A stretch of 64,000 nt of DNA, from positions 150,201-214,200 of IMG/VR virus record IMGVR_UViG_3300032931_001151, one strand, 5' to 3'. Under the pieces are notes generated by a model, which was given only the letters and a program-made list of their open reading frames with translations, was not told the origin of the DNA and did no database searches. This document shows, piece by piece, positions 42,689 through 64,000 of the stretch. A program made the position numbers and the translations under genes. The stretch's first letter is position 1, and each line of letters starts with the position of its first letter.

Positions 42689-42711
42689 TGAAACTATAGC
42701 AAGAATACTTG

Positions 42712-44231: not shown

Positions 44232-44234
44232 ATT

Positions 44235-44936: not shown

Positions 44937-44964
44937 TTTTTTAATCCTTTAATAATATTATACA

Positions 44965-46320: not shown

Positions 46321-46328
46321 AATTTTCC

Positions 46329-47797: not shown

Positions 47798-48638
47798 AAT
47801 TCTTTTCTCCTCTTAATAAGTTTTTAGCAATTTTATAGTTCTTAGTACTTCCGTTTCTATAAGTATTAATTATGATATCCATCATATCGTTAATATTCTT
47901 ATTAGTTATATCAATATGAGATTCGTTAGTGAATATTTTAGATACTTCCGATGCTCCCCAATAAATCGGAATACTATTACACAAGATAGGATCATAGAAT
48001 TTTTCAGTTACCCAATATCTATAAGAGGCATTTTCAATTGCTATAGAATATTCATATGGTGAGAAAGCATCCGGCTTATGTTCTACTATTCCCTTAACTC
48101 TTGAATCTCCTTGATAGTAACGACATCCTCTTCCGTATATATGAATATCTAAATTAGTTTTTAATATTCTTTTTATTAGTTCATGTCTTAATGCATGTCC
48201 GCTAAAGTATGTTTTATCCGATGCTATTATAGACATTCTATATGGTTTACTGACATTTTCAAATTCGTCTTTTTCTCCGTAAATTGGGACTTGCGGAGCT
48301 AAATAGCAAATACCTTCTTGAAAACATGGCCAATTCGGAAATCTTTTCTTATCGTGGCATATATACGTTCCAATATTTTCTTTAATATATGGCAAATAAC
48401 TAGACGAATCTAATATCTCAAAAGGCTCATGCATTAACCCTAATACTCTTTCTTTTGGTACTTTTAATTGCGGAGTTCCATGATTTATAATAACCGCATG
48501 AGTATAGTTATCATCGTCAACAATTTTCATATTTTTATATTCTGCTTTTCCATATCCCCAAGATTTAAAAGCATTTCTTAATCCATATGATGGTGCAAAG
48601 TCGGAAAATATTTGTACTCTTATTTCGTCCATGGCCAA
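47763..48638 (-). CDS. GT10 (alpha-1,3/4-fucosyltransferase-like)
   Basis: YEYSIAIEN...YWVTEKFYD..L...IPIYWG. Confidence 0.8.
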   Translation of the reverse strand: MAMDEIRVQIFSDFAPSYGLRNAFKSWGYGKAEYKNMKIVDDDNYTHAVIINHGTPQLKVPKERVLGLMHEPFEILDSSSYLPYIKENIGTYICHDKKRFPNWPCFQEGICYLAPQVPIYGEKDEFENVSKPYRMSIIASDKTYFSGHALRHELIKRILKTNLDIHIYGRGCRYYQGDSRVKGIVEHKPDAFSPYEYSIAIENASYRYWVTEKFYDPILCNSIPIYWGASEVSKIFTNESHIDITNKNINDMMDIIINTYRNGSTKNYKIAKNLLRGEKNFAHYLWEKFNV

Positions 48639-49411
48639 CTCCTTACATAAGCTTTTAAATCTTCTTTTGACATTCCAATGATTTTTTTATATTCTTCTTC
48701 GTTTTGTTTAAATCTTGGATTGGTTGTATCGCTATTAAATGTTCTAGAATGGTCTAAATGGAATAATTTACCATCAATCGATCCTATTTTATATCCCAAT
48801 TTTCCAAATCTATCTCTTCTCTCAACATCTTCAGGTCCCCAAGACATAAAGTTTTCATTTTCCATACCTCCTTCTACGTATTTTGATTTATTCATAAATA
48901 AACATCCGCCGGGCGGTGGTGACGGATGTTCAAATGATACTAATGGATCAATTCCTGCTAAATTGAGAGTTAATCCAAATGAATTATGGTATTTACTTGG
49001 AATATTATGATTCGGCTTATTAAAAGGATAGCAAAAATCTAATATATTACCTCTAACAACTTGTGCGGCATTAAGATATTGATGTGGATAAAAAACTACA
49101 TCCGAGTCTTGGCTAACTATTATTGGGGTTTTAGCCCTCTTCGCCATAATATTTAGGTTTTTTGTTTTATGGAATAAGTCGGAGTCGTTTTGTCTATATA
49201 TGTATGTTAATTTTTTATTCCATTCTGCTCTCATTAATTGTGGAAATAGTGCTTGTTTCCCTTCTTCACATATGATGACAGAAGTATCAAAGTGCTTAAA
49301 AAGATACGAGAGAAGTAAATCTATTATTTTCTTTCTATCTTCTGATTCTATTTTAAGAGGTATTAAAAACGTTACGTCACGCAAATTAGACATTATTTTA
49401 TCCATCCCCAA
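48620..49411 (-). CDS. GT2/GT7-C-like glycosyltransferase
   Basis: QDSDV; GGCLF; NENF.SWGPED. Confidence 0.8.
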   Translation of the reverse strand: MGMDKIMSNLRDVTFLIPLKIESEDRKKIIDLLLSYLFKHFDTSVIICEEGKQALFPQLMRAEWNKKLTYIYRQNDSDLFHKTKNLNIMAKRAKTPIIVSQDSDVVFYPHQYLNAAQVVRGNILDFCYPFNKPNHNIPSKYHNSFGLTLNLAGIDPLVSFEHPSPPPGGCLFMNKSKYVEGGMENENFMSWGPEDVERRDRFGKLGYKIGSIDGKLFHLDHSRTFNSDTTNPRFKQNEEEYKKIIGMSKEDLKAYVRSWPWTK

Positions 49412-50151
49412 GTTGCCACTTGTGTTTTCAATGCTTCTCTTGAAAGAGATGATATTCTATGAAATTCCATCTCGTTATCTCTATATGCTTTATGTTCGGT
49501 GTTTGCGCTATTAGGACTTCTCGGATGCGATAGATGATAAAGAGCGCCCTCTATTCTTGAAATTCTATATCCTAATGTTCCAAAACGTTTTAACCTTTCA
49601 TCATCTTCCCAACCCCATGACACAAATCGTTCATTTTCCATTCCACCTTCAATGAACTTTTGCTTATTCCAGAATATAGCACCACCAACGGATTTAGGAT
49701 GAATTAAGTTGCCATTTGATGGTGTTATATTCTCAATCGTTAGATTATTTTGAACATTTGATATGTGTGGTTCAATTAAATCTATAAATCGTCCATCATA
49801 TGGGTAAACCATATCATATTTATTCTCTCTAATAACTCTTACGGCTTGGACATATTGTGCAATTGGGAATAAAACGTCGGTGTCATAGTTAACTATAATT
49901 GGCGTAGTTGATTGTTTGGCTAGAACATTAAGACAATACGTTCTATGCATAAGATAATCACCACGAGGAATGAAAATATGCTTGAATTTTCCAACATCTT
50001 TAAATTTTGATTCCGTGTCATTTTCGCAAATTAATATATTTGTATCAAAATGTTTATTGAGATAATTTATAATAATTCTAATATTTCGTAATCTTTCGGG
50101 GGTGTCTAATTTGAAGGGGATATTAAATGTCACGTCGGTTAAATTTATCAT
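49393..50151 (-). CDS. GT2/GT7-C-like glycosyltransferase, paralog of the adjacent gene
   Basis: YDTDV; GGAIF; NERFVSWGWED. Confidence 0.8.
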   Translation of the reverse strand: MINLTDVTFNIPFKLDTPERLRNIRIIINYLNKHFDTNILICENDTESKFKDVGKFKHIFIPRGDYLMHRTYCLNVLAKQSTTPIIVNYDTDVLFPIAQYVQAVRVIRENKYDMVYPYDGRFIDLIEPHISNVQNNLTIENITPSNGNLIHPKSVGGAIFWNKQKFIEGGMENERFVSWGWEDDERLKRFGTLGYRISRIEGALYHLSHPRSPNSANTEHKAYRDNEMEFHRISSLSREALKTQVATWGWIK

Positions 50152-50774
50152 ATTTCTTTTATTAAACCTTTATCTAAATAGTGGTTATATAATACCGTTT
50201 CTGCTTGTTGTGGATGATAATTAAAACAATCGCTTTTATCTAAATATTTTTCCCAATAATACTTGTATGGGTATTTTCTAGCCGGATCAAATCCTGTCAC
50301 GAATATTTCAGCATCTTTGAATCTATATAAACATGATTCTATAGTAGTCATTCCTGAGTCTGGGTAATACCATTCCATGTTATTTTTTAAATTCTCGCTT
50401 ATTGTCTTCATTTTATTGTATAAATTGTCGTAAATGTAAGGATCTACAAATATAAATTCTAATGGTTTAAATCTACCAAAATGTTCTCTAGCCCTAACTC
50501 TATTATTATGATGTCCTTTTGCAAATTTGTCTGGTATCCAAACTTCATTGCATAGTTTGAAATTTTCTATTAATCTATGACTCCCTAATAATCCCGCCGT
50601 AGCCCCTTCTCCCGTTATCATCATAGAAATAATATCTACTTTTTTACCAACATAACTTTCCCACCCTTCAATGAGAAAATTATTCATCCTAATAACCCTA
50701 TCACAAGAATCAATGAAATCTCCATTTTTAACCATGGAAGCCTTATATCCATTTGCAACAATCGCTATTCTCAT
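50148..50774 (-). CDS. GT29 (sialyltransferase-like) protein
   Basis: IAIVANG...NGDFIDSCDRVIRMN (sialylmotif L-like); PDSG...I...L......VTGFD (motif S-like). Confidence 0.65.
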   Translation of the reverse strand: MRIAIVANGYKASMVKNGDFIDSCDRVIRMNNFLIEGWESYVGKKVDIISMMITGEGATAGLLGSHRLIENFKLCNEVWIPDKFAKGHHNNRVRAREHFGRFKPLEFIFVDPYIYDNLYNKMKTISENLKNNMEWYYPDSGMTTIESCLYRFKDAEIFVTGFDPARKYPYKYYWEKYLDKSDCFNYHPQQAETVLYNHYLDKGLIKEI

Positions 50775-51589
50775 TTATGATTTCTCCAAAATTCAGAAGC
50801 CTCTTGGATTTGTTGATTAATATTTTGTTTAACTACTCCGCTATCTCTTTGGCATACTTTTACTTTCCATTTAGCATATTCTTCGTCATTTTCCGGTGGG
50901 TGGATGATGGGTATAGAATCTGACATTTGCCAAGTAAATCCTTTCTGTCCCAAATCCATAAGGAAATAAGCATCATCACCGGCGTATACGCCCATAACCC
51001 TATATCCGCCAATCGTTTCCCATGCCCTTCTTGACATAAATAGGCATCCGCCCGCAATTCCACTCGGTTGATTAGGCCATACAACTTTTTCGTTGAATGT
51101 TTTGCCATTAAATGTTATAGAATAATCATTTACATTTTCATAACAAGTTTTATAATGACATCCGTGTCCGTTTTGTTGTAATCCTATTAACCCAAATGGT
51201 TTGCCTTTTATAGTCTCTGTCTTATTAGCCATAGCAATAAGACGATTGAAGAATTCTTCATTATCTTGGGGGAATAGTATATCCGAATCGGCTGACATAA
51301 TATACTTGTGGTGAGACTTTAAGAACTTTTTCGTTAAAGTGTTTACTACTACGGCTTTACCTACATTATCATTAAATGATAATATGTCTTTTTTTCCAAA
51401 TTGGTCTTTAATGGTTGATAAAATTGGTGCCCACTGTTGTTTATCTTTGCACCATCCGCCGAAGCAAACGTCAACATTCTCTACTTTGTGTTCTTTTAAG
51501 TATTTGCCCAAAGATATTAGAGAATTTATGTTTCTTTCTGTAACTCTAGTTATTGGTCCAAATATTGGCTGACAAAGTAAAATTGACAT
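50771..51589 (-). CDS. GT2-like glycosyltransferase
   Basis: NVGKA; ADSDI; AGGCLF; YAGDDA. Confidence 0.7.
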   Translation of the reverse strand: MSILLCQPIFGPITRVTERNINSLISLGKYLKEHKVENVDVCFGGWCKDKQQWAPILSTIKDQFGKKDILSFNDNVGKAVVVNTLTKKFLKSHHKYIMSADSDILFPQDNEEFFNRLIAMANKTETIKGKPFGLIGLQQNGHGCHYKTCYENVNDYSITFNGKTFNEKVVWPNQPSGIAGGCLFMSRRAWETIGGYRVMGVYAGDDAYFLMDLGQKGFTWQMSDSIPIIHPPENDEEYAKWKVKVCQRDSGVVKQNINQQIQEASEFWRNHK

Positions 51590-51673
51590 AAATATTCCTT
51601 ATATTGTATAATGTAATTATACCATAGAAGATATTTATTTTCCCTTCTAAATATATGTAATAGGAGATAATTT

Positions 51674-53345: not shown

Positions 53346-55598
53346 ATGTCAGTTAAAATGCTTCAAGAATATACTAGATATTCAAAATACTCAAAATACT
53401 TGCCAAATGAGAAAAGAAGAGAGACTTGGGAAGAACAAGTAAATAGAGTATTTAGTATGCACGAAGCAAATTTTGGAGATAAATTAAAAGATATTAAAGA
53501 AGATTTTGATTTTGCTAAATCAATGGTAATGAAAAAAAGAGTGTTAGGTTCTCAACGAGCATTACAATTTGGTGGAAAACCAATACTTGATAAGAATGCT
53601 AAAATGTACAACTGTACCGTTAGTTATGTAGATAGACCTAGATTTTTCCAAGAATGCATGTATTTATTATTGTGCGGATGTGGTACGGGATTCTCGGTAC
53701 AAACCCATCACATACAAAAACTTCCTGGAATTATGGCAAGAACTAATGGTGAAAAAACTTATGAAATTCCCGATAGCATTGAAGGTTGGGCGGATGCGGT
53801 TGGAATTTTAGTATCTTCATATTTTACGAATGATCAACCATTTAAAGACTATATTGGATATAAAGTAAATTTTGATTATAGTAAGATTAGGCCAGCCGGA
53901 GCTTCTCTCTCTTGGGGTGGGAAGGCTCCAGGACCTAAAGGATTACAAGCCTCTTTGAATAAAATAGAAGAAATTTTTGAAAATGTTTTAAAGTCTTCAG
54001 AAAAAGTAAGTTCCAAGTTAAGACCAATTGACGCATATGATATGATAATGCACTTATCCGATGCCGTAATTAGTGGAGGTGTGCGTCGAAGTGCGTGTAT
54101 TTCAATATTTTCCGCCGATGATATGGAAATGGCAAATGCTAAAACCGGAGATTGGTTTATAAAGAATCCGCAAAGAGGTCGATCAAATAATTCAGCTTTA
54201 CTAATTCGTAAGGAAACCACTAAAGAAGACTTTACAAAGTTAATGAAATCGGTTAAAGAATTTGGAGAGCCTGGATTTATTTGGAGCGATAATAAAGAAT
54301 CATTATATAATCCATGTGTTGAAATTAATATGTATGCTTATAATGACGAAGGAAAGTCTGGTTGGCAATTTTGCAACCTTTGTGAAATCAATATGAAAAA
54401 ATGCAAGACAAGAGAAGAGTTTTTAGAGTCATGTCGAGCCGCAGCAATTTTAGGAACATTGCAAGCCTCATATCATAAATTTGATTATTTGGGGGAGATA
54501 TCGGAGCAAATTGTTAAAAAAGAGGCATTATTAGGATGCTCAATGACTGGAATGATGGATAGTCCCGATATAGCATTTAATCCCGAAATACAAAAAGAGG
54601 GTGCTCAATTAATTCTTGATGTAAATGAAAAAATAGCTAAAATACTCGGAGTTAATAAATGTGCAAGAGCCACATGTGTTAAACCTGCTGGTAGTACAAG
54701 TTGTCTTCTTGGTTCGGCTAGTGGAATTCATCCACATCATGCTCGTAGATATTTCCGTAGAGTTCAAGCAAATGTAAATGAGGCACCTCTTAAGTATTTC
54801 CAGGCCCATAATCCAAGAGCCGTAGAAACTTCGGTTTGGAGTAATACCAAAACCGATATGGTAATTTCGTTCCTTTGTGAAGTTCCAGATGGTGCTAAGA
54901 TAAAAAATCAAGTAAATGCTATTCAACTATTAGATCATGTAAAATTGACCCAACAAAATTGGGTTGAATTTGGTACAAGAAAAGATGCACCCGTTGCATC
55001 TTGGCTAAGACATAACGTATCAAATACTATAACGGTAAAGGACGATGAGTGGGATGGAGTAACCGATTATATTTACGAAAATAGAAAATGGTTCGCCGGA
55101 ATATCACTATTGCCAATGTCGGGAGATCTTGATTATCCACAAGCGCCATTTACCACCGTACTTGAACCTAAAGAAATAATGGCTCAATATGGAGAAGGAT
55201 CGCTATTTGCTTCTGGTTTAATCGTTGATGGATTAAAAGCATTTAATGACAATCTTTGGGCAGCTTGCGATTGCGCTTTAGGAATAGGAGAAAAACTTTC
55301 ACTAACTCCCGAACAAGCAAAATTGACCAATGGGAAACTTAAAGCATTAGTTGATAAGTTATCGGAGAAAGAAGATTGGATTCGTAGATTTAAGCAATTT
55401 GCTGAAAGATATTGTAATGGCGATTTAAGAAGATGCTCACATCTTTTGAAGCACGTTACTAATTATAAACTTTGGGTGGATTTGAAGAGAGAATACCAAC
55501 CAGTTGATTGGTCATTATGCTATGAAGAAGACTTTAAAATAGATGTTACTACTTTGGCGGGCCAAGCATGTAGCGGCGGTCAATGTGAAATGAAGTAA
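53346..55598 (+). CDS. nrdJ: Class II (B12-dependent) ribonucleotide reductase
   Basis: YSKY....KRRETWEE; YNC; GGVRRSA; NPC.EI; CNLCE; TCVKPAGS; C-terminal CSGGQC. Confidence 0.9.
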   Translation: MSVKMLQEYTRYSKYSKYLPNEKRRETWEEQVNRVFSMHEANFGDKLKDIKEDFDFAKSMVMKKRVLGSQRALQFGGKPILDKNAKMYNCTVSYVDRPRFFQECMYLLLCGCGTGFSVQTHHIQKLPGIMARTNGEKTYEIPDSIEGWADAVGILVSSYFTNDQPFKDYIGYKVNFDYSKIRPAGASLSWGGKAPGPKGLQASLNKIEEIFENVLKSSEKVSSKLRPIDAYDMIMHLSDAVISGGVRRSACISIFSADDMEMANAKTGDWFIKNPQRGRSNNSALLIRKETTKEDFTKLMKSVKEFGEPGFIWSDNKESLYNPCVEINMYAYNDEGKSGWQFCNLCEINMKKCKTREEFLESCRAAAILGTLQASYHKFDYLGEISEQIVKKEALLGCSMTGMMDSPDIAFNPEIQKEGAQLILDVNEKIAKILGVNKCARATCVKPAGSTSCLLGSASGIHPHHARRYFRRVQANVNEAPLKYFQAHNPRAVETSVWSNTKTDMVISFLCEVPDGAKIKNQVNAIQLLDHVKLTQQNWVEFGTRKDAPVASWLRHNVSNTITVKDDEWDGVTDYIYENRKWFAGISLLPMSGDLDYPQAPFTTVLEPKEIMAQYGEGSLFASGLIVDGLKAFNDNLWAACDCALGIGEKLSLTPEQAKLTNGKLKALVDKLSEKEDWIRRFKQFAERYCNGDLRRCSHLLKHVTNYKLWVDLKREYQPVDWSLCYEEDFKIDVTTLAGQACSGGQCEMK

Positions 55599-55622
55599 AT
55601 TATATAATTAATTTATGATATA

Positions 55623-55650
55623 ATTACCTCCGTGGAAATACGGAGGTAAT
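55623..55650 (+). terminator. Intrinsic terminator after RNR
   Basis: ATTACCTCCGT-ggaaat-ACGGAGGTAAT plus T-tract. Confidence 0.85.
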
Positions 55651-55654
55651 TTTT

Positions 55655-55963
55655 TTGAAAACACTCACTGATCAATATAAATGTTACTTTTGTGAATTAC
55701 AAGAACCTATTAATGTATCTAAAACTAATAATTTTAGAAGGCTCATAGAAAAGCACCATATTATAGAAAAAAACCAAAATGGAAATAATGATGCTAATAA
55801 TTTAGTTCCAGTATGCTCTAATTGTCACTCAAAGATACATCTAGGACTTATTAATCCAAAAATGTGGCTATTTACTACTAGCGGTTGGAAATTGCTTTGG
55901 AAAGATTCTAAGAATATAGAGTATCTCGGAAGAGATAAAATTTCTATAAATAGTCATATATAG
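55655..55963 (+). CDS. HNH endonuclease
   Basis: CYFC; EKHHI; N.ANNL..VCSNCHSKIH; TTG start and no clear SD. Confidence 0.7.
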   Translation: MKTLTDQYKCYFCELQEPINVSKTNNFRRLIEKHHIIEKNQNGNNDANNLVPVCSNCHSKIHLGLINPKMWLFTTSGWKLLWKDSKNIEYLGRDKISINSHI

Positions 55964-55986
55964 AAACTATTATTAGGAGTCTCATT

Positions 55987-57273
55987 ATGGATGCTATATT
56001 CAATGAAGAAGTTAAAAATATATTTACAACTACTTATAATACAACATTTAACGAAAATGTTAAAATTAGAAATTATTTGACGGAATCAAAAAAGAGATTT
56101 CCACATCTTAATGAGAGTTTTCTTATTGAAAATAAAGATTTGATGGAAAACATTAAGAAATTTGACGTATCTGATAGAGATATTATGGATGCTTTTCATG
56201 TTGACTTAGTACAAGCTAAAAATATTCATACATCATTTAGATCATTCGCAATAGCAGAACATTATGCAAAGATCGAACAAGACGTAGAATTATTCAATGA
56301 AAAAGTAAATGCCTCTTGTTTATCGGTTTTATTAGTTGAAGCACCTAAATTTGACCCAGAAGCAACTTTAGATCCGGCTTTTATGTCTCAACAAAAGTTG
56401 GCGGCAGTTAAAAAGGCTTCCCAAAAAGCACAACAATCTACTCCAAAAGCACTAGAAGTAGCACCTGAAGCCCCAAAGGCAGCCGAAACTACCCCCGAAC
56501 CGGCTAAAGCTGAAGAAAAAAAAGGATTCTTGGCAAAAGTTAAAGACTTCCTTGTAAAAGCTGGAAAAATAGTCGTGGCGGTTGGCCAATCTAAAGCTTT
56601 CTATAAAGCCCTTGCTATGGGTGCTATTATGGTTATTCTCGGAGTAATAGCCGGAGCATTAGGCGGTTGGTTCGCAATAGGATTTGCAGGGATAAAAGGT
56701 CTTTTAGGATTATTCTCAATATATAAGGGTTCAAAAGAACTTATTAAAACTGCCGATTTTGCACAAGGTAAAAAGGGAATAGAAGGTGTCAAAGAGTGGA
56801 TTAAGAGTTCTAAAGATCCAAAAAATGCAACCAAAATAATCGTTGCTATCGCTAAGATAGCTCTAGGTACTTGGGGTGCGTCATCTGCAATAGGTAAGAT
56901 AATGACTGAAATTACTATTATGGGTGGATCTCATGTTGGGGCTACTCCTGATGTAAGTAAAGCGGCACCAACTACTAGTCCAACTTCGGATATAGCGAAA
57001 GTGTCTGGCGCTGAAGCCGTTCCTACGGTTGATCACGCTAAAGATCAATTAGAAAAAATATCTAAAATATTTGCTACCAATCCAACTCAAGGAAAAGTTT
57101 TATTTTCAAAGTGGGGAGAAGCATTAGCATCGGCAGAATCTGAAGGAAAAATAACGGATGGTCAAGTGTTGGAAATGCTTAAAGGCAAAATGTCTCCAGA
57201 AAAAGCAGATACTTGGTGGGAAATGGCAAAACAAAGTTTTGACTCGGCCCAAAAAGCAACGGCGATTAGATAA
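55987..57273 (+). CDS. Late protein with central Gly/Ala-rich hydrophobic hairpin
   Basis: TATAAATA 55945-55952; AGGAG SD. Confidence 0.6.
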   Translation: MDAIFNEEVKNIFTTTYNTTFNENVKIRNYLTESKKRFPHLNESFLIENKDLMENIKKFDVSDRDIMDAFHVDLVQAKNIHTSFRSFAIAEHYAKIEQDVELFNEKVNASCLSVLLVEAPKFDPEATLDPAFMSQQKLAAVKKASQKAQQSTPKALEVAPEAPKAAETTPEPAKAEEKKGFLAKVKDFLVKAGKIVVAVGQSKAFYKALAMGAIMVILGVIAGALGGWFAIGFAGIKGLLGLFSIYKGSKELIKTADFAQGKKGIEGVKEWIKSSKDPKNATKIIVAIAKIALGTWGASSAIGKIMTEITIMGGSHVGATPDVSKAAPTTSPTSDIAKVSGAEAVPTVDHAKDQLEKISKIFATNPTQGKVLFSKWGEALASAESEGKITDGQVLEMLKGKMSPEKADTWWEMAKQSFDSAQKATAIR

Positions 57274-57274
57274 A

Positions 57275-57601
57275 TCATTTTAAATTTTGTGCGGCCTTGA
57301 TGTCTTTATCAAGGTCGCTAAATTTCTTCTCCGTGCTATCATTATTTTTCCGACCTAGAACTTTGTGATTTTTCATATCATCAATAGACTCCGATACCAT
57401 CTTATCAATGGTCAAATCTAAAGAAATGTACGGACTCATTTCGTTGATTTTTTCTTTGAGTTTCTTATTCTCGGTTTGATACGTGATTAGAGTCACTTCA
57501 AGTTGCTTAACTTTATTACGACTTTGAAGTCCATCCATAATAGATGAAGCTACTAATATAACTCCCGAAAGAATAAGACCGATTGCTAGTGATTTTGACA
57601 T
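57275..57601 (-). CDS. Small N-anchored coiled-coil membrane protein
   Basis: LAIGLILSGVILVA TM followed by coiled coil; AAGGAG SD. Confidence 0.6.
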   Translation of the reverse strand: MSKSLAIGLILSGVILVASSIMDGLQSRNKVKQLEVTLITYQTENKKLKEKINEMSPYISLDLTIDKMVSESIDDMKNHKVLGRKNNDSTEKKFSDLDKDIKAAQNLK

Positions 57602-57672
57602 TTTGTATCTCCTTGGCCTTATTATAGAGATAGATTTGGATATGTCAAGAAGGTAATTCTAAAAGAAAGTTG

Positions 57673-57700
57673 TTGACAAACTTAAAAGGTATGCTAGAAT
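57673..57700 (+). promoter_or_regulatory. Sigma70 promoter with extended -10 for the tRNA array
   Basis: TTGACA-16 nt-TAGAAT with TG extension; a late TATAAATA follows at 57725-57732. Confidence 0.75.
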
Positions 57701-57751
57701 GAAAGAGAAGAAAAAAGAAATCAATATAAATAACACTAAAGGATATAAATC

Positions 57752-57868
57752 ATGACCACTCAAACTAACATTAAGCTTCGCTCGGATAGCAAGCCCTTAT
57801 CATGGGATTCCCATAGTATGTTAGTGTCCCTCTTTAGCATTATGCCAAGCAAGGGACTCCTAGGTTAA
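57752..57868 (+). CDS. 38-aa attenuator leader peptide (8 Ser)
   Basis: AAAGGA SD; MTTQTNIKLRSDSKPLSWDSHSMLVSLFSIMPSKGLLG; stop lies in the 5' arm of the antiterminator. Confidence 0.75.
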   Translation: MTTQTNIKLRSDSKPLSWDSHSMLVSLFSIMPSKGLLG

Positions 57869-57922
57869 GATTCGGACACATCCGATAACTCTTAAACCTA
57901 GGGCCAAAACCCTAGGTTTTTT
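57859..57922 (+). promoter_or_regulatory. Mutually exclusive antiterminator/terminator
   Basis: CCTAGGTTAAGA(57859-70) pairs with TCTTAAACCTAGG(57890-902); AAACCTAGGG(57894-903)-ccaaaa-CCCTAGGTTT plus U-tract. Confidence 0.8.
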
Positions 57923-57979
57923 CGTATTTGACAACTATATAATTGTAGAATAGAAGACATACTCTTTGAGTGTGTCTAT

Positions 57980-58070
57980 GGAGTAGACAATAGGAAAAGT
58001 TCCTAGAGAGTTTGCTAAACTCATCGTGCCTTTTATTAGGCATTCAGTGCGAATCTGAGCTACTCCACCA
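57980..58070 (+). tRNA. tRNA-Ser(GCT), atypical D-arm
   Basis: GGAGTAG/CTACTCC acceptor; loop TT-GCT-AA; long variable arm; CCA. Confidence 0.8.
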
Positions 58071-58072
58071 AT

Positions 58073-58150
58073 GGGCAAAAGTCTAGCTGGTATGCTAGTA
58101 AACGTCTGATAAGCGTTTTTAGGTGAGTTCGATTCTCACTTTGCCCACCA
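58073..58150 (+). tRNA. tRNA-Ile(GAT)
   Basis: GGGCAAA/TTTGCCC; CT-GAT-AA; TTCGATT; CCA. Confidence 0.85.
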
Positions 58151-58218
58151 TTCCCTTTAATAGAGTTGGAGTTGAAACTATTTTAGCTGAGGTTAAGCTA
58201 ATTAAAACCTCAAGTCAT

Positions 58219-58294
58219 CAGGCCGTAGTGTTTAACAGTAGCATGGCTCGTTTGGGGCGAGGTGGAGGGAGTGCAAATCTCCCCGGCTTGACCA
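58219..58294 (+). tRNA. tRNA-Pro(TGG)
   Basis: CAGGCCG/CGGCTTG; TT-TGG-GG; CCA. Confidence 0.85.
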
Positions 58295-58309
58295 TTTTTA
58301 GTAATTCAT

Positions 58310-58383
58310 ACCGATGTAGCATAAGTAGCAAATGCGAAAGATTGTCGATCTTTAGATAGTGGGTGCAAGTCCCATCATCGGTG
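58310..58383 (+). tRNA. tRNA-Asp(GTC), CCA not encoded
   Basis: ACCGATG/CATCGGT; AAAGA-TTGTCGA-TCTTT. Confidence 0.85.
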
Positions 58384-58444
58384 CTTTTATTAACAATAGA
58401 ATTAATATATGATATAATGTACTTTCACTATTAGAAAGGATTAT

Positions 58445-58714
58445 ATGAAAGATTCAAAATATGGCATATTTCAAGAATATATAAGATGCTATAGAGATAT
58501 ACTCATTTATATAAAAAAGTATGAACATGATAGCGATGAAATCACTAAGGATAGATTTGAAAGTAAAAGGTTAAAATTAATAGATATGGAAGAAAACGAA
58601 TCGTTTATTGTTAATATTCTATCTATATTAGAAATGCCTAGCACACAAGATATTTGTATTACGAGTAGTTTCCCAAGTAATATTTTGAAATGCACTACAT
58701 ATAATAAAAATTAA
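58445..58714 (+). CDS. Hypothetical protein in the tRNA array
   Basis: AAAGGA SD. Confidence 0.55.
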   Translation: MKDSKYGIFQEYIRCYRDILIYIKKYEHDSDEITKDRFESKRLKLIDMEENESFIVNILSILEMPSTQDICITSSFPSNILKCTTYNKN

Positions 58715-58730
58715 TTTATATAGAATTTAT

Positions 58731-58805
58731 GCCGGGGTCGTATATGAGGTAATACGCAAGTCTGAAGAACTTGATCAACGGATTCGAGCGCCGTCCCCGG
58801 CACCA
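58731..58805 (+). tRNA. tRNA-Phe(GAA)
   Basis: GCCGGGG/CCCCGGC; CT-GAA-GA; CCA. Confidence 0.85.
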
Positions 58806-58850
58806 TTTACATAGGGTTACAACTCCCATAGTTAAAAGTTGAAACTTTGT

Positions 58851-58927
58851 GGGTTGCAAGCATAAATGGAAGGATGCCATCGATTCTTAATCGATAGAGT
58901 AGGGTTCGAATCCCTAGCGACCCACCA
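58851..58927 (+). tRNA. tRNA-Lys(CTT)
   Basis: GGGTTGC/GCGACCC; TT-CTT-AA; TTCGAAT; CCA. Confidence 0.9.
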
Positions 58928-58930
58928 CAT

Positions 58931-59019
58931 GGATTAGGCAATTGCAGGAGATGCAACATTGTTTGGAAAACAATTGGGGCCTTTACGGGCCTTTGGAGCG
59001 TAACCAAGCTAATCCGCCA
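58931..59019 (+). tRNA. tRNA-Ser(GGA), atypical D- and T-arms
   Basis: GGATTAG/CTAATCC; ATTGT-TTGGAAA-ACAAT; long variable arm; G73; CCA. Confidence 0.75.
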
Positions 59020-59024
59020 TTTTT

Positions 59025-59114
59025 GGAAATACGGGAACATAGTTGTTCAAATAGTTTCGAAAACTATCCTTGGTCTTAATTGGCCTAACCGTGCGATTCG
59101 GTGTATTTCCTCCA
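59025..59114 (+). tRNA. tRNA-Ser(CGA), 8/4 acceptor/T-stem fold
   Basis: GGAAATAC/GTATTTCC 8 bp; ACCG/CGGT T-stem; TT-CGA-AA; CCA. Confidence 0.75.
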
Positions 59115-59148
59115 ACTTCGTGATATAATAAATAGTACGAGAGGCAAT

Positions 59149-59937
59149 ATGAATATAACAATTGATCACGATAACGATGGTTTTGGCGCACAAATGATGG
59201 GTATTATATCTGCTATAGCATATGCAAAATTTCATGAACATACTTATTATCACACACCAAGAAAAAATATAAAATTGGTTGGGATAGAAGAACCTCAGAA
59301 TGCGGAGATTGATAAAATTAATGAGTTTTTAAACACATTTATGAAAAATTTGGGAATAAATTTAATGCCATCTGAAATTTTACTTGACGGAGAGGGTAAA
59401 CCAAAATTTACATGTGAAGTTAGGCCACATTTTCATGACGAAATATATTACAACGGATCAAACTATTATACGAAAGAATTTAATACATATCTAAGACAAA
59501 ATTATCCACTTACTAAACCTAACTATTATGAAAATATGCATAATATAGCAATTCACATTAGAAGGGGATCTGATATAGATTCACCATCGCAACGGCATAA
59601 TAGATGGATTGATTCAAACGTTTATAATTGTCTTATAGACTTAATACACGTAAAATATCCAAATAGTATTATACATGTATTTTCTTGGGGTGATCCAGAA
59701 ATAGAGATAAAACCGTTCATAGTATTTCATTCATCAAATAGTGGTTCAACATTTTTAGATGACTATAATGCATTAGTTTGGGCCGACATATTGGTAGTGG
59801 GGTCAAGTACTTTTAGTCTTTCTGCCGCTCTTATAAACAATAATAAAATAATAATTGATGGGGCATTTTATAAATTAAATGGTATGTACATACCAAATGA
59901 ATGGATGCAAAATTTTAAAGAATTTTATGTAATGTGA
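59149..59937 (+). CDS. GT11-like (alpha-1,2-fucosyl/colitosyl-transferase-like) glycosyltransferase
   Basis: DGFGAQ; IAIHIRRGSD; ADIL..G.STFS; true start after the tRNA-Ser(CGA). Confidence 0.75.
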   Translation: MNITIDHDNDGFGAQMMGIISAIAYAKFHEHTYYHTPRKNIKLVGIEEPQNAEIDKINEFLNTFMKNLGINLMPSEILLDGEGKPKFTCEVRPHFHDEIYYNGSNYYTKEFNTYLRQNYPLTKPNYYENMHNIAIHIRRGSDIDSPSQRHNRWIDSNVYNCLIDLIHVKYPNSIIHVFSWGDPEIEIKPFIVFHSSNSGSTFLDDYNALVWADILVVGSSTFSLSAALINNNKIIIDGAFYKLNGMYIPNEWMQNFKEFYVM

Positions 59938-59986
59938 AATATTATAGAATAAAGAATTATTCTAAAGATTATGAAAAAATTAAAAT

Positions 59987-60078
59987 GGATCGGTGAGTGA
60001 GCGGTCAAAACTAGAAATTTACTAAATTTCCGATCCCAGAAATGGGGTCCGTAGGTTCGAATCCTACCCGATCCGCCA
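59987..60078 (+). tRNA. tRNA-Ser(ACT)
   Basis: GGATCGG/CCGATCC; GAAAT-TTACTAA-ATTTC; long variable arm; G73; CCA. Confidence 0.85.
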
Positions 60079-60081
60079 TAT

Positions 60082-60174
60082 GGAGAGAACAACCGAGAAT
60101 AGTTTTCGGCACTGATTTGAAATCAGAGGGTTCCGTGCAAACGGGATAAGGTGCGATACCTTGGCTCTCCACCA
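60082..60174 (+). tRNA. tRNA-Ser(TGA), extended D-stem
   Basis: GGAGAG/CTCTCC; CTGA-TTTGAAA-TCAG; long variable arm; CCA. Confidence 0.75.
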
Positions 60175-60176
60175 TC

Positions 60177-60204
60177 TTGACAATATATTAAAATATGCTA
60201 TAAT
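60177..60204 (+). promoter_or_regulatory. Sigma70 promoter with extended -10 directly upstream of the suppressor tRNA
   Basis: TTGACA-16 nt-TATAAT with TG extension. Confidence 0.75.
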
Positions 60205-60214
60205 GAACTCACAT

Positions 60215-60286
60215 GGGTCATTGACCGAGTGGCACAGGTGATGGGTTCTAAACCCATTTAGAAGTGTTCAAATCACTTATGACTCA
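60215..60286 (+). tRNA. Amber suppressor tRNA (anticodon CTA)
   Basis: GGGTCAT/ATGACTC; ATGGG-TT-CTA-AA-CCCAT; AAGTG-TTCAAAT-CACTT; A73; followed by CAA, not CCA. Confidence 0.8.
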
Positions 60287-60319
60287 CAATTATAAATAAA
60301 CACTAGCAAAGGAGCTAAT

Positions 60320-60430
60320 ATGATTGCTTAGAAGAAATTAGAATATGGGTAGGTAGGTTGTCGTGGACCTCCTATTTGTTATTGGTTGAATAATCTCAAA
60401 TTAACACCAATAACAAGGAATATAATATGA
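60320..60430 (+). promoter_or_regulatory. Leader ORF with two in-frame UAG codons, coupled to the downstream gene
   Basis: AAAGGAG SD; MIA*KKLEYG*VGCRGPPICYWLNNLKLTPITRNII-TGA; TGA overlaps ATG 60427; hairpin 60376-60416 abuts and covers the downstream SD. Confidence 0.7.
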
Positions 60431-60855
60431 ATAAAAAAGAATTGATTGCTAAGATTAAAGAAGAAATTAAAGTCACTTCCGAGATCCTTAGAATAAATAA
60501 AAAGACTCACAAACAAAACCAAAGAATGTATTCACAAGGCACAAGACCTTTTGAGTTAATTCAACTTTATCCGTTTGATGTGGAAAAGGTAACACCTTTT
60601 AATCATAATTATGTAAAAGTAATTGATGGAAAACATTATTGGAACTATAGTTACAACGAAACTCCATGCAATGCGGGCATTGAGTCGGCAAAGTGCCACT
60701 TGACTTGTCTACATATTGTGTATAATATGCTTCGTACAAAAAAGACGCATTGCCACAACATTGAAAGGAATGATTATTATGTTAAATATTTTGATAAGCT
60801 CATACAAGGATATCTTAGCCAAGTGGAAGAGGAACAAAATGTTGTCGTATCCTGA
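60427..60855 (+). CDS. Hypothetical protein preceding the PTH2-like gene
   Basis: AAGGA SD; LHIVYNMLR motif. Confidence 0.65.
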   Translation: MNKKELIAKIKEEIKVTSEILRINKKTHKQNQRMYSQGTRPFELIQLYPFDVEKVTPFNHNYVKVIDGKHYWNYSYNETPCNAGIESAKCHLTCLHIVYNMLRTKKTHCHNIERNDYYVKYFDKLIQGYLSQVEEEQNVVVS

Positions 60856-61210
60856 ACCACCATCTTTAGAAGAAGCACTAAAACAAGTTAGAATGTATGT
60901 TTTAGTAAGAAGGGAAATTTTACCTTTAGTCCATTGTGTTTGTCAATGTACACATGCGGTAGCCGAATTTATTCATTATCATCAAAATGATAATACTAAA
61001 TTATGGGTTACATGTGAAAAAACTTTAATTGTTTTAGAAGCGACGGAAGACCAAATAAAAGAAAAAATGATTTGGTTTGCTGACCGTCATATGAATTATC
61101 AACCTTTTTGTGAACCGGATATGAATAATGTTCTAACGGCGGTTGCGTTTCAACCAATTACAAAACAAATTGGTAATGAAGTTTTTGGTAACTTAAAGCT
61201 TCTAAAATAA
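60839..61210 (+). CDS. Peptidyl-tRNA hydrolase, PTH2-like phage family
   Basis: YVLVRR; Q..HAVAEF; W.....LIVL; F.EPDM...LTAVA. Confidence 0.7.
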   Translation: MLSYPEPPSLEEALKQVRMYVLVRREILPLVHCVCQCTHAVAEFIHYHQNDNTKLWVTCEKTLIVLEATEDQIKEKMIWFADRHMNYQPFCEPDMNNVLTAVAFQPITKQIGNEVFGNLKLLK

Positions 61211-61223
61211 TATTTAAAAATGA

Positions 61224-61262
61224 CCCGTCCAAGTATAAATAAGTTTATAACACTTGGACGGG
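61224..61262 (+). promoter_or_regulatory. 11-bp hairpin enclosing a late promoter and sequestering the SD of the endonuclease gene
   Basis: CCCGTCCAAGT...ACTTGGACGGG; TATAAATA 61234-61241; ATG 61271. Confidence 0.8.
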
Positions 61263-61270
61263 ACACTATT

Positions 61271-61897
61271 ATGAATGAAAATGTACTTAGAAAAGATAAA
61301 CAAAAATTACATCTTATTAAAAAATTAAGATGTATTATGGATCATGGCGGAAAATGTAAACATTGTGGAAAGGATTTAATAATAAACCACTACGATGCAG
61401 ATTTTCATCATATAGACCCTTCGATTAAAGAAGTTGTGGGGCATTCTTTAATGAATGGGCATTATTACAAAATAAAAAAAGAAGTTGATAAGTGTATTTT
61501 ATTATGTGGATCGTGTCATAGGTATGAACATTGTAAATGGAAAGATTGGATTAATCACAAAGAAGAATTACTTTCTTTAGCAAAAAATATTCATAATAGG
61601 AGAACCATAGAAGATACACAACAACGTATTAAAAAAATTAAAGAATTATATTTAAGCGGTAATGGTATAAGACAAATAGCAAAAATATTAGGAATACCTG
61701 TATCCTCTGTTGGATATACAATTAAGAAATTGGGTATAGGTAGACCATTTATTACTAAAGTGTCTAATGAAGAATTGATAGAATGTTTTAAGCAAGGAAT
61801 GACAGCAAGTGAGGTTTCAAAAAAATATAATTGTTGTTATGCAAACTGTTGTAGAAAACATAAAAAATGGAGAAATAAAAAAAGTAAGCTGCTATAG
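61271..61897 (+). CDS. HNH-type homing endonuclease with C-terminal HTH domains
   Basis: CKHCG; DFHHID; CILLCGSCHRYEH; GIRQIAKILG. Confidence 0.8.
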   Translation: MNENVLRKDKQKLHLIKKLRCIMDHGGKCKHCGKDLIINHYDADFHHIDPSIKEVVGHSLMNGHYYKIKKEVDKCILLCGSCHRYEHCKWKDWINHKEELLSLAKNIHNRRTIEDTQQRIKKIKELYLSGNGIRQIAKILGIPVSSVGYTIKKLGIGRPFITKVSNEELIECFKQGMTASEVSKKYNCCYANCCRKHKKWRNKKSKLL

Positions 61898-61961
61898 TAT
61901 AATGGTATTATGCGATCTTGGTATGATTGAGACGGAAGTTCGATTCTTCCTGGCAGCACCA
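61888..61961 (+). tRNA. tRNA-Thr(GGT)
   Basis: GCTGCTA/TGGCAGC; TT-GGT-AT; CCA; overlaps the endonuclease stop. Confidence 0.85.
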
Positions 61962-62027
61962 TTCAAGTTACACTTTTTTCTAAGAGTTTTGTGTTTCCAA
62001 GCAAGCAAACGAAAAAACTTAGTGCAT

Positions 62028-62101
62028 ACAGTAATAGTATAACGGAATTATTTTCCACTCCAAACGGAAAGATCGTGGTCCGACTCCACGTTACTGTGCC
62101 A
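62028..62101 (+). tRNA. tRNA-Trp(CCA)
   Basis: ACAGTAA/TTACTGT; CT-CCA-AA; CCA end. Confidence 0.75.
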
Positions 62102-62106
62102 ATCAT

Positions 62107-62182
62107 ATCCGTTTAGCTCATTAGGAAGAGTTTCTTGGTCCTAACAAGAAGGTAGTAGGTTCGAATCCTACAACGGATGCCA
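62107..62182 (+). tRNA. tRNA-Arg(CCT)
   Basis: ATCCGTT/AACGGAT; GT-CCT-AA; CCA. Confidence 0.85.
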
Positions 62183-62193
62183 AAATTTAGTAT

Positions 62194-62267
62194 ACCCGGT
62201 TCATCTAATGGAAGGATATAAAACTACGAATTTTATCATTTAGGTTCGAATCCTAAGCCGGGTGCCA
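62194..62267 (+). tRNA. tRNA-Arg(ACG)
   Basis: ACCCGGT/GCCGGGT; CT-ACG-AA; CCA. Confidence 0.9.
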
Positions 62268-62270
62268 TTT

Positions 62271-62393
62271 CTCTAGATGCATTAAAGGATTACACCAAAC
62301 AGTGGATTGTAGGTTCAACTCCTACCAAGTGAAAGCTTGTAGCTTAATTGGCAAAGCAACCGTCAAAAACATCTTTTAAACTTTTTGCTAGAG
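62271..62393 (+). ncRNA. Circularly permuted tRNA-like RNA (T-arm, loop-closed acceptor stem, D-arm); Y-RNA/YrlA-like architecture
   Basis: GTAGG-TTCAACT-CCTAC; CAAGT-GAAA-GCTTG; TA-GCTT-AATTGGCA-AAGC. Confidence 0.65.
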
Positions 62394-62405
62394 AATCTTT
62401 TTCAT

Positions 62406-62495
62406 GCGGATGTGTTGGAATTGGCAGACATCATAGTTTTAGACACTATGGCGAAATTAAGTAGCGTGCAGGTTCAACTCCTGTCGTCCGCACCA
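62406..62495 (+). tRNA. tRNA-Leu(TAG)
   Basis: GCGGATG/CGTCCGC; TT-TAG-AC; long variable arm; CCA. Confidence 0.9.
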
Positions 62496-62499
62496 AATT

Positions 62500-62636
62500 G
62501 TTGTCGTGTAGCTCAGTGGTTAGAGCGAATTTTTGAGGAAACGAGAAATTGTTTCTAGGTCGCAAATAGTGACCGTTCAAAATTGTGCGGGTAAAAATGT
62601 CTTTAGTGACATGGTTCGATTCCCCCTACGACAACA
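62500..62636 (+). ncRNA. tRNA-like RNA with a branched insert replacing the anticodon loop
   Basis: GTTGTCGT/ACGACAAC; canonical D-arm GCTCAGTGGTTAGAGC; TTCGATT T-loop; no 7-nt anticodon loop. Confidence 0.6.
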
Positions 62637-62646
62637 TCTTTTTCAA

Positions 62647-62732
62647 GCGTCTATGGAGAAATAGAAGACTCGTGAGACTAAGAATCTCATTCCGTAAATG
62701 GAGTACAAGTGCAAGTCTTGTTAGGCGCACCA
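62647..62732 (+). tRNA. tRNA-Leu(AAG)
   Basis: GCGTCTA/TAGGCGC; TGAGA-CTAAGAA-TCTCA; CCA. Confidence 0.85.
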
Positions 62733-62747
62733 TTTTGTAAAATCCAC

Positions 62748-62835
62748 GGGGGCGTGGTGAAATAGAAAACACACAACGCTTAAAACGTTGCGGATAGAAA
62801 TATCCTTGCAGGTGCAAGTCCTGTCGCCCCTACCA
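62748..62835 (+). tRNA. tRNA-Leu(TAA)
   Basis: GGGGGCG/CGCCCCT; CT-TAA-AA; CCA. Confidence 0.9.
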
Positions 62836-62840
62836 ATTAC

Positions 62841-62914
62841 GCCGATTTAGTATAGTGACATTACAATTGATTCGTATCCAATAAACGATGGTTTAATTCC
62901 ATCAATCGGCACCA
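62841..62914 (+). tRNA. tRNA-Thr(CGT)
   Basis: GCCGATT/AATCGGC; TT-CGT-AT; T-loop TTTAATT; CCA. Confidence 0.75.
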
Positions 62915-62915
62915 G

Positions 62916-63344
62916 TTATTCGTGAAATAGTTTCTTTACTTTATTCGTAAGTTCAACATTTTCTACTAATTTAGGAATGACCATTCCAAATTCTCTACCT
63001 TTAGTTTTAATATAAGGAAATGCAATCATAAGAATATCGAGTAACTCTCTATATTTTCTAAAGTTTTCTATAAATTGTTTTTTATCTTTTATCTCTTTTA
63101 TGTTGTTTAAATTGGACAATAAAGAAATAAAACAAACTAAATCATCGTTATTCTTAAAGTGATCTAATGATATATTGGTAGAGTTGGTTAAATCGTCGTC
63201 AATTTGTGATTTTGAGGGTACTAATGGTTCTATTTTTTTAGGAGTTGGTCTTGACTTCCATTTATCAAAAAAACCTTCAATTAATTGTAAATCTTCTGTT
63301 AAACTTGATAAATCTTCATTTAATTCTTGTTGTTCTAATGGCAT
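62916..63344 (-). CDS. Late hypothetical protein (MPLEQQELNE...)
   Basis: AGGGGAG SD; TATAAATA 63364-63371 (-). Confidence 0.65.
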   Translation of the reverse strand: MPLEQQELNEDLSSLTEDLQLIEGFFDKWKSRPTPKKIEPLVPSKSQIDDDLTNSTNISLDHFKNNDDLVCFISLLSNLNNIKEIKDKKQFIENFRKYRELLDILMIAFPYIKTKGREFGMVIPKLVENVELTNKVKKLFHE

Positions 63345-63408
63345 AATGACTCCCCTATTGACATATTTATAATGAGGACTATAATAAATATAAGAAAAGG
63401 GGTATAAA

Positions 63409-63639
63409 ATGAGTACTCTAGAACTCTTAAATAATGAAGACCTAGATTGCCTAGATGGTATGCTCATCTTTGGCATGAATGGGGATATTAATCGGTATAA
63501 CGTGTGTAAACTTAAGGTTGATGAATATTTAGTGGAAGAAGCCATTAAGGAATATGGATTAAAAGATGCTTTAAAAGAAAAAGTAATTACCCAAAAAGAG
63601 GCTAACGAGTATCTTGAAAAGCATAAGTTTGTTGCATAA
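63409..63639 (+). CDS. Hypothetical protein
   Basis: AAGGGG SD. Confidence 0.55.
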   Translation: MSTLELLNNEDLDCLDGMLIFGMNGDINRYNVCKLKVDEYLVEEAIKEYGLKDALKEKVITQKEANEYLEKHKFVA

Positions 63640-63640
63640 T

Positions 63641-63714
63641 GGGCGTTTAGTTTAATGGAAAAACATCTCTTTTACACGGAGAATTCGGGGGTTCGATTCC
63701 CTCAATGCCTACCA
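63641..63714 (+). tRNA. tRNA-Val(TAC)
   Basis: GGGCGTT/AATGCCT; TT-TAC-AC; CCA. Confidence 0.9.
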
Positions 63715-63718
63715 ATAT

Positions 63719-63804
63719 GCGGAGTGAAGTCCAATGGCCGGACATCAGATTGTGGCTCTGAGTGCGAAAGCACATTGCGGGTTCGAATCCCGTCACTTCG
63801 CCCA
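63719..63804 (+). tRNA. tRNA-His(GTG) with long variable arm
   Basis: G-1:C73; TCAGA-TTGTGGC-TCTGA; GTGC-GAAA-GCAC extra arm; CCA. Confidence 0.85.
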
Positions 63805-63809
63805 TTTAC

Positions 63810-63885
63810 GGTGGATTAGTTATTCGGCAATAACAGTAGTATCATAAACTACACAAAAAGGGTTCGACTCCCTTATCCACTACCA
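63810..63885 (+). tRNA. tRNA-Met or Ile2 (CAT)
   Basis: GGTGGAT/ATCCACT; AT-CAT-AA; CCA. Confidence 0.8.
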
Positions 63886-63937
63886 ATTTTCTATTCTACA
63901 ATTCCCCTATTATAAATAAGTTAATAAGGGGCTTTCA

Positions 63938-64000
63938 ATGAACTTTAAGCAATTTTATAAAGAAGGTTTAGTCCGTACTCCTACGGACGATATTCGTAAA
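63938..64000 (+). CDS. Partial late ORF (MNFKQFYKEG...)
   Basis: TATAAATA 63911-63918; AAGGGG SD. Confidence 0.55.
   Translation, partial: MNFKQFYKEGLVRTPTDDIRK

Follow-up and report, generated by a model that had tools for sequence, protein, structure and literature searches.

Ribosome-mediated, or leader-peptide, attenuation of transcription is best described in the amino-acid biosynthetic operons of enterobacteria, among them trp, his, leu and pheA and the multivalent thr and ilvGMEDA operons. In these systems a short promoter-proximal ORF is followed by an intrinsic terminator, four RNA regions form mutually exclusive 1:2, 2:3 and 3:4 pairings, region 2 lies at the end of the ORF, and the codons of the leader are cognate to the product of the regulated operon. 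The principle also extends to the translation apparatus itself, as in the attenuation of pheST in Escherichia coli, where ribosome stalling on cognate codons in the pheM leader controls a synthetase through a single amino acid. T-box riboswitches likewise take a read-through decision at an intrinsic terminator that depends on tRNA status and regulate genes of the aminoacylation system, but they bind uncharged tRNA directly, through a specifier codon and the T-box sequence, with no ribosome and no ORF. Phages may encode large sets of tRNAs, including isoacceptors with unusual anticodon loops, which are reported to compensate for loss of host tRNAs or to act in counter-defence, for example the T5 tRNAs against PARIS or retron/PtuAB, although this work concerns what the tRNAs do rather than how their transcription is regulated.

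Here we describe a locus in an uncultured T4-like phage where a short leader ORF and a predicted switchable terminator lie in front of a block of phage tRNA genes. It has the elements listed above for the enterobacterial operons, apart from the 1:2 pairing, which is predicted but weak in the window, and its use of several amino acids resembles thr and ilvGMEDA, but the genes behind the terminator encode tRNAs rather than enzymes, the leader samples about 13 amino acids through scattered codons rather than runs, the system is phage-encoded, and a second promoter-like element follows the terminator. Compared with pheST, it would control the tRNAs themselves and through many codons. A cmscan of positions 55000-64000 against Rfam at E<=1 gave no hit in 57600-57980, so that the region matches neither the described leader families (Trp, His, Thr, Leu and similar) nor the T-box, and a translated ORF is present instead. 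Attenuation is a known mechanism; what appears to be new is its proposed use as a feedback switch for tRNA supply, as full-text literature searches found no description of leader-peptide attenuation of phage tRNA arrays or of any tRNA operon.

The leader region and its predicted alternative structures

The DNA analysed, referred to here as the window, is a stretch of 64,000 nucleotides covering positions 150,201 to 214,200 of the IMG/VR record IMGVR_UViG_3300032931_001151, and is the last 64 kb of this 214 kb contig. Its GC content is about 32% and its replication genes are T4-like, with a gp43-type polymerase, a gp46-like nuclease and topoisomerase II. A blastn search of 57300-58400 against cultured phages found no match, the best match of the ribonucleotide reductase (RNR) protein among cultured phages is only 50% identical, and a search of IMG/VR with the neighbouring 428-aa protein found only the window's own contig. 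The module lies in a divergent intergenic region, between a 108-codon gene on the minus strand that ends at 57601 and the tRNA array on the plus strand.

A first-pass annotation, made from the sequence alone, had described tandem sigma70 and late promoters, a Shine-Dalgarno site, a 38-codon ORF and two mutually exclusive hairpins ahead of the tRNA genes, and every one of these features was found where it had been placed. A sigma70-type promoter lies at 57673-57700 on the plus strand, as do all features below, and consists of TTGACA, a 16-nt spacer and TAGAAT with a TG extension (11 of 12 matches); in the orthologous locus of a close relative, L221, both hexamers are kept while the spacer differs. 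It is followed at 57725-57732, 19 nt upstream of the leader ATG, by TATAAATA, a T4-type late-promoter motif with only 7 copies in the window. This motif occurs 16-44 nt upstream of the leader ATG in every related module and the replication genes are T4-like, but a gp55 homologue was not sought, which leaves its assignment as a late promoter undecided, and promoter function is inferred. A Shine-Dalgarno-like AAGGA at 57739-57743 precedes by 8 nt the ATG at 57752, and the ORF runs for 38 codons to a TAA stop at 57866-57868 (ORF with stop, 57752-57868).

Downstream of the ORF, an intrinsic terminator with a 10-bp stem, 5 GC pairs and a 6-nt loop has its stem at 57894-57919 and a T run extending to 57922. 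The alternative hairpin, at 57858-57903, shares 57894-57903 with the terminator, so that the two exclude each other. Its 5' strand, CCUAGGUUAAGA, spans the last codons and the stop, its 3' strand is UCUUAAACCUAGG, and an inner hairpin lies at 57872-57885. The sequence CCTAGG occurs three times within 58 nt here (57859, 57897 and 57911) and only six times in the whole window. In predicted folds, the 5' arm of the terminator is paired with a probability of about 1.0 before the 3' arm exists, and pairing this arm upstream is worth 9.8 kcal/mol, against 3.8 +/- 2.2 in mononucleotide shuffles of the upstream sequence (P=0.01). The full-length minimum-energy fold is the terminator form (-52.5 against -47.2 kcal/mol), and forcing the footprint of a terminating ribosome to be unpaired frees the 5' arm of the terminator. 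The whole leader is strongly structured (z = -3.95), with two hairpins inside the ORF at 57764-57857 that may serve as an RNA polymerase pause or timing element, a function that is inferred; in L221 a cluster of 5 substitutions rebuilds a hairpin at the same place.

Related modules and the match between leader codons and tRNA blocks

Searches anchored on the RNR gene and on neighbouring genes recovered several lineages of relatives, whose loci we denote by L numbers. L221 is a close relative whose neighbouring protein is 76% identical; the group of L003/L168/L036, L140, L142 and L229 has RNR proteins 78-79% identical; and L226 and L230 come from one more divergent contig. Other routes added little: a search of IMG/VR for the pattern TATAAATAACAYTARAG returned mostly chance hits, and a back-translated type-b peptide pattern found only loci already known. 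In the L003 group and in L226/L230 the tRNA array has two blocks, each preceded by a module built like that of the window. Block a holds Gly, Glu, Tyr, Lys, Thr, Asn, Ile(TAT), Met, Arg and Ala tRNAs, whereas block b holds Ser x5, Thr, Val, Arg(ACG), Ile, Pro, Asp, Phe, Gln, Trp, His and Leu tRNAs, and the module in the window is of the block-b type. Together there are five sequence-divergent versions, three of which precede a Ser/Leu/Gln-type block (b) and two a Gly/Glu/Lys-type block (a), namely the window with L221 (38 codons), type b in L003, L142 and L229 (33 codons), b' in L226 (34 codons), type a in L003 (2787-2861), L142 and L140 (24 codons) and a' in L230 (21 codons). Each has a sigma70-like promoter, TATAAATA, a Shine-Dalgarno site, an ORF, a nested hairpin, a strong terminator, a promoter-like box and then a tRNA. 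The module is not universal, as a more distant lineage with a tRNA array, L143, has a plain promoter and no such module, and the tRNA region of phage T5 has small ORFs but no terminators after them.

The first-pass annotation had proposed folding the region and looking for covariation among relatives as tests of its reading, and had named homologues without the open frame or the alternative pairing as evidence against it; in all five versions both are kept. Each version was folded in three stages. Up to the stop codon, the last codons of the ORF (region 2) pair with the start of the ORF or the Shine-Dalgarno region (region 1); up to the terminator loop, region 2 switches to the 5' arm of the terminator (region 3) with a probability of about 1.0, giving a nested hairpin; and at full length the terminator (3:4) gives the minimum-energy structure, 5-17 kcal/mol below the antiterminated form. 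The stop codon lies 24-29 nt before region 3 in all versions, and the partners of region 3 in the 2:3 helix lie between 16 nt upstream of the stop and a few nt past it. This helix uses a different sequence in each version, co-varying with the terminator stem: CCUAGGUU / AACCUAGG in the window, GGGGGUU(U) / (A)AACCCCC in type b, GAGUCAGG / CCUGACUC in b', CGGGGGU / ACCCCUG in type a and AGAGGCU / AGCCUCU in a'. Across versions the pairing is worth 8-11 kcal/mol, against about 4 +/- 2.3 in shuffles (P = 0.01-0.06 each), and shuffles give no reason for the partner to sit at the stop codon every time. A MAFFT alignment across module types was too poor for column-wise covariation counts, and separately predicted folds were therefore compared; the antiterminator rests on structure prediction only. 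The type-b modules of L003 and L142 (L003b and L142b) differ by a compensatory T-A to A-T change in the terminator stem. A 1:2 helix joining the start of the ORF to its end is predicted in every version, with 9-15 bp in types a, a' and b, 5 bp in b' and 5+3 bp in the window, where it involves the start-codon region (57749-57757) and is weak, being stronger in types a, a', b and b', so that this feature is neither established nor excluded by the folds.

The ORF evolves as a translated sequence. L003b and L142b differ at 13 positions in the ORF, 11 of them at codon position 3; ten codon changes are synonymous and two are not, and both replacements, Ser to Thr (ACC) and Ser to Leu (TTA), give codons still read by block-b tRNAs. 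The window and L221 differ by three synonymous changes and two replacements, Asp to Thr and Ser to Asp, which also stay within the amino acids of the block. Between these two, the leader ORF is 94% identical, the stretch from stop codon to box 97.6% and the first tRNA-Ser gene 96.7%, whereas the two flanking genes are 74% and 59% and the RNR gene 83%.

The leader of the window contains eight Ser codons (TCG, AGC x3, TCA, TCC x2 and AGT, with no TCT), and eight or more Ser in 38 codons has P=0.009. All three Lys codons are AAG, although genes of the window use AAA for 77% of Lys codons. Using standard wobble rules fixed before testing, 33 of the 38 codons are read by the tRNAs of the downstream block, against a mean of 49% in 38-codon windows of the window's genes (P=3e-4) and with P=0.005 against random small ORFs. 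As the leader is 45% GC against 32% for the genome, we considered that the exact codon-anticodon match might be a GC3 artefact, and therefore relied on wobble-level matching and on swapping the two blocks, which control for composition. Codons read by the leader's own block, against the other block, number 33/38 against 9/38 in the window (P=6e-5), 25/33 against 7/33 in type b (P=6e-4), 27/34 against 6/34 in b' (P=4e-4), 16/24 against 4/24 in type a (P=6e-3) and 13/21 against 5/21 in a' (P=0.06). Own-block codons thus make up 62-87% of each leader, against 43-49% in genes, and other-block codons 17-24%; pooling the codons that only one block can read gives an odds ratio of 16.7 (P=4e-9). Leaders within a class are homologous, so the five tests are not fully independent, although the class-b peptides have diverged almost beyond alignment while keeping the composition. 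The match is highest in the reading frame of the ORF. Two details fit the pattern: the Gln codons of the b and b' leaders looked unmatched until complete blocks were obtained, which turned out to contain tRNA-Gln(TTG) and tRNA-Gln(CTG), and the a' leader carries a TTA codon where block a of that lineage carries tRNA-Leu(TAA).

A proposed attenuator and competing readings

We consider this locus to be a probable ribosome-mediated, multivalent attenuator of a phage tRNA block, at a probability of about 0.6 and on computational evidence only; no experimental data exist and the host is not known. In this model, transcription starts at the sigma70-type promoter, and probably also at the TATAAATA late promoter, and a ribosome translates the leader. 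If decoding is fast, the ribosome would occupy the last codons and the stop (region 2, 57858-57870) while RNA polymerase makes 57894-57922, so that region 3 is free to pair with region 4 and transcription stops at the U tract. If the ribosome lags because a tRNA needed by the leader is scarce or uncharged, region 2 would pair with region 3, and this antiterminator would block the terminator and let polymerase read on into the tRNA genes. With no ribosome at all, region 2 could pair with the start-codon region, which again favours termination. As the leader is built from codons served by the block's own tRNAs, the device would be a multivalent negative-feedback loop on their supply, acting on top of constitutive expression from the box behind the terminator. 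The sequence elements, the predicted alternative structures with their conservation and covariation, the match between leader codons and block tRNAs and the coding-type evolution of the ORF come directly from the analysis, whereas it is by inference that the promoters work, that transcription and translation are coupled, and that the response has this direction and a given physiological trigger; the effect of ribosome stalling on read-through was not measured. The sampled codons are scattered and varied rather than clustered as in trp or his, so sensitivity to any single tRNA is uncertain, and as the terminator form is the more stable, read-through depends on folding kinetics, which were not computed. 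Conservation at the amino-acid level would also fit a functional micropeptide.

The interpretation given in the first-pass annotation is partly supported. Its core, trp/his-type attenuation geometry with a leader whose codons mirror the downstream tRNA genes, is strengthened by the comparative data. Its view that the module gates the array is too strong, since the box and three sigma70-like promoters inside the array, at 58390, 60177 and 63358, mean that the attenuator cannot be the only route to tRNA expression and that read-through can only add to it. Its emphasis on serine is too narrow, because the leader samples about 13 amino acids and the paralogous type-a leader has no Ser codon at all. 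Its link to anticodon nucleases, and any actual response to tRNA depletion, is inference on which no sequence evidence here bears. One possibility is that read-through matters mainly late in infection, when TATAAATA promoters are active, but this is speculation.

A broader reading, which we hold only tentatively, is that large phages put each block of their tRNA genes under its own multivalent leader-peptide attenuator, the leader acting as a 'codon menu' of that block, so that the phage would measure block by block whether those codons can be decoded and transcribe replacement tRNAs only when decoding falters, for example on degradation of host tRNAs during infection or cleavage by anticodon nucleases. 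This would be the first feedback regulator of tRNA gene transcription that works through translation of cognate codons. Phage tRNA genes are usually treated as constitutive cargo; if the device works as proposed, phages regulate tRNA supply homeostatically by reading the decoding capacity of the infected cell directly, and attenuation would extend from metabolic operons to tRNA genes themselves. It would also provide a compact natural sensor, in a module of about 250 nt, of the availability of many tRNAs at once, which could serve as a reporter of tRNA depletion or of anticodon-nuclease activity, and the paralogous a and b leaders make opposite predictions about which tRNAs matter.

Two other readings are unlikely, to a similar degree. 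The first is that this is an ordinary small phage gene, encoding a micropeptide of 21-38 residues with its own promoters and an intrinsic terminator, which happens to lie next to the tRNA genes, the upstream complement of the terminator arm having no regulatory role. The coding constraint on the ORF, an N-terminal MTT.T.N.K motif shared by the window, type a and a', the many small genes inside phage tRNA regions, as in T5, and the promoter-like box of the tRNAs would fit this view. It does not, however, explain why each leader's codons match its own block and avoid the other, why peptides of one class diverge almost beyond recognition yet keep that composition, why the strand complementary to the terminator arm co-varies in five versions, always at the stop, or why the non-coding stretch from stop to box is so conserved, and no PHROG family matches the peptide. 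The second is that the module is a transcription-unit boundary, or insulator, whose terminator ends upstream transcription (the leader transcript here, block-a transcripts in relatives) so that the box promoter fires undisturbed, with the ORF and alternative pairings only tuning terminator efficiency or the stability of the terminated RNA. In its favour, a promoter-like box follows the terminator within 5-10 nt in every version, the type-b terminator lies at the end of block a in relatives, and the 5' purine tract can pair with the U tract in full-length folds. In the window, however, the upstream gene is divergent, so the only transcript to be stopped is the one made by the module's own promoters, which is pointless unless that transcript is itself a sensor or a product, and an insulator needs neither a translated ORF nor codons matched to the block.

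Least likely is a non-coding small RNA of about 215 nt, from promoter to terminator, whose structure rather than its translation is the functional unit and whose ORF is incidental, since, although the leader is strongly structured (z = -5.66 in type a), nucleotide conservation is high and terminated attenuator RNAs such as rnTrpL are known to act in trans (PMC6614838), a role that could coexist with attenuation, the substitutions between L003b and L142b fall mostly at third codon positions and are mostly synonymous, an ATG with a Shine-Dalgarno site is kept in all versions, the codon match is frame-specific and no Rfam family matches.

The promoter-like box and the tRNA genes behind the terminator

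The box at 57928-57951 consists of TTGACA, a 12-nt spacer and TAGAAT, and always lies just upstream of a tRNA gene. There is 1 copy in the window, 4 in L003, 5 in L168 (one of them a tandem repeat), 4 in L142 and 1 in L140, with 0 in 3.5 Mb of unrelated loci. A scan of IMG/VR with the box pattern gave 37 loci, but none of the new ones has a tRNA next to the match and several are ordinary sigma70 promoters. A reading of the box as a canonical sigma70 promoter was rejected, because the spacing between TTGACA and TAGnnT is 11-12 nt and not 16-18. Where there is no intervening hairpin, a start 7 nt after the TAGnnT element falls on position 1 of the tRNA (L003 2951 and 7078; L226 943), and the box is most simply read as a dedicated tRNA promoter with non-canonical spacing, although promoter function is inferred. 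Between the box and the first tRNA of the window lies a hairpin (57955-57977) whose structure is kept but whose sequence is replaced in relatives (window, L003b, L142b and L221), and whose function is not known.

The first gene of the block, tRNA-Ser(GCT) at 57980-58070, starts 58 nt after the terminator. It is followed at 58073-63885 by 21 further tRNAs, namely Ile, Pro, Asp, Phe, Lys, Ser x4, an amber-suppressor-like CTA tRNA, Thr x2, Trp, Arg x2, Leu x3, Val, His and Met, with small genes interspersed. The block thus holds 22 tRNAs and ends at tRNA-Met (63810-63885), a point after which ordinary genes follow in L221. All five tRNA-Ser anticodons listed in the first-pass annotation are present, with GCT followed by GGA (58931-59019), CGA (59025-59114), ACT (59987-60078) and TGA (60081-60175). 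Standard tRNA finders miss a substantial share of these genes: at default settings ARAGORN finds only Ser(ACT) of the five, adding Ser(CGA) when relaxed, and Rfam finds one, both missing Ser(GCT), whereas a custom cloverleaf scan recovers all five. Ser(GCT) has extra bases between the acceptor and D stems, and several of the others have atypical T loops.

Elements around the terminator and the first tRNA gene

The purine-rich 5' end of the leader transcript (57701-57720) is complementary to the U tract of the terminator (57917-57925) and pairs with it in full-length folds, which could stabilise the terminated leader RNA. Beyond the terminator, a conserved box (TTGACAAnTnTATA..GTAG, then TAGnnT) lies directly upstream of tRNA genes, with the predicted start at tRNA position 1. 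It occurs at 57928-57951 in the window, at 2921, 3254, 7048 and 12401 in L003 (a related locus with a two-block tRNA array), in four copies in L142, a second relative of the same group, and at about 914 in L226, which comes from a more divergent contig. As the spacing from TTGACA to TAGnnT is 11-12 nt, this may be an unusual promoter class or a factor-binding site. A hairpin of unknown function is found between the box and tRNA-Ser(GCT) (window 57955-57977; about 11965-11984 in the close relative L221; L003 12431-12447), and this is kept as a structure while its sequence is completely replaced between lineages. It could be a 5' stabiliser or a processing signal.

Unusual tRNA genes of the array

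Four of the five tRNA-Ser genes (57980-58070, 58931-59019, 59025-59114 and 60081-60175) are missed by ARAGORN at default settings, and by Rfam even at E<=1. Ser(GCT) has extra bases between the acceptor and D stems, and several of the others have atypical T loops, and tRNA counts for such phages are probably underestimates. Several tRNAs have A at the wobble position, these being Ser ACT, Arg ACG and Leu AAG in the window (59987-60078, 62194-62267 and 62647-62732) and Thr AGT and His ATG in relatives (L226 5638 and 3590), and the set looks close to one tRNA per codon.

A tRNA with anticodon CTA, which would read amber codons and is labelled 'Pyl' by ARAGORN, is located at 60215-60287 and has its own perfect sigma70-like promoter at 60177-60204. 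Relatives also carry this tRNA. In L230, a locus from the same contig as L226, the type-a' leader ends in TAG and its block holds this tRNA, such that stop-codon read-through of that leader is conceivable. A tRNA-like sequence at 62502-62634 (Rfam tRNA, 24 bits) has a normal acceptor, D arm and T arm but about 60 extra nucleotides in the middle, and may be an intron-containing or disrupted tRNA.

Other genes and a possible RNA in and near the array

A weak match to the Y-RNA-like YrlA family (62270-62397; 35 bits against a gathering score of 69) lies between tRNA-Arg(ACG) and tRNA-Leu(TAG). Pfam and PHROG hits place a PTH2-family peptidyl-tRNA hydrolase homologue and an HNH endonuclease inside the tRNA array (60839-61210 and 61220-61897), of which the PTH2 gene is conserved in the arrays of relatives. 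Upstream of the RNR gene, on the minus strand at 42700-51600, there is a run of glycosyltransferase-family genes and an asparagine-synthase-like gene, as labelled by Pfam, and this run is conserved in the loci L221 and L222.
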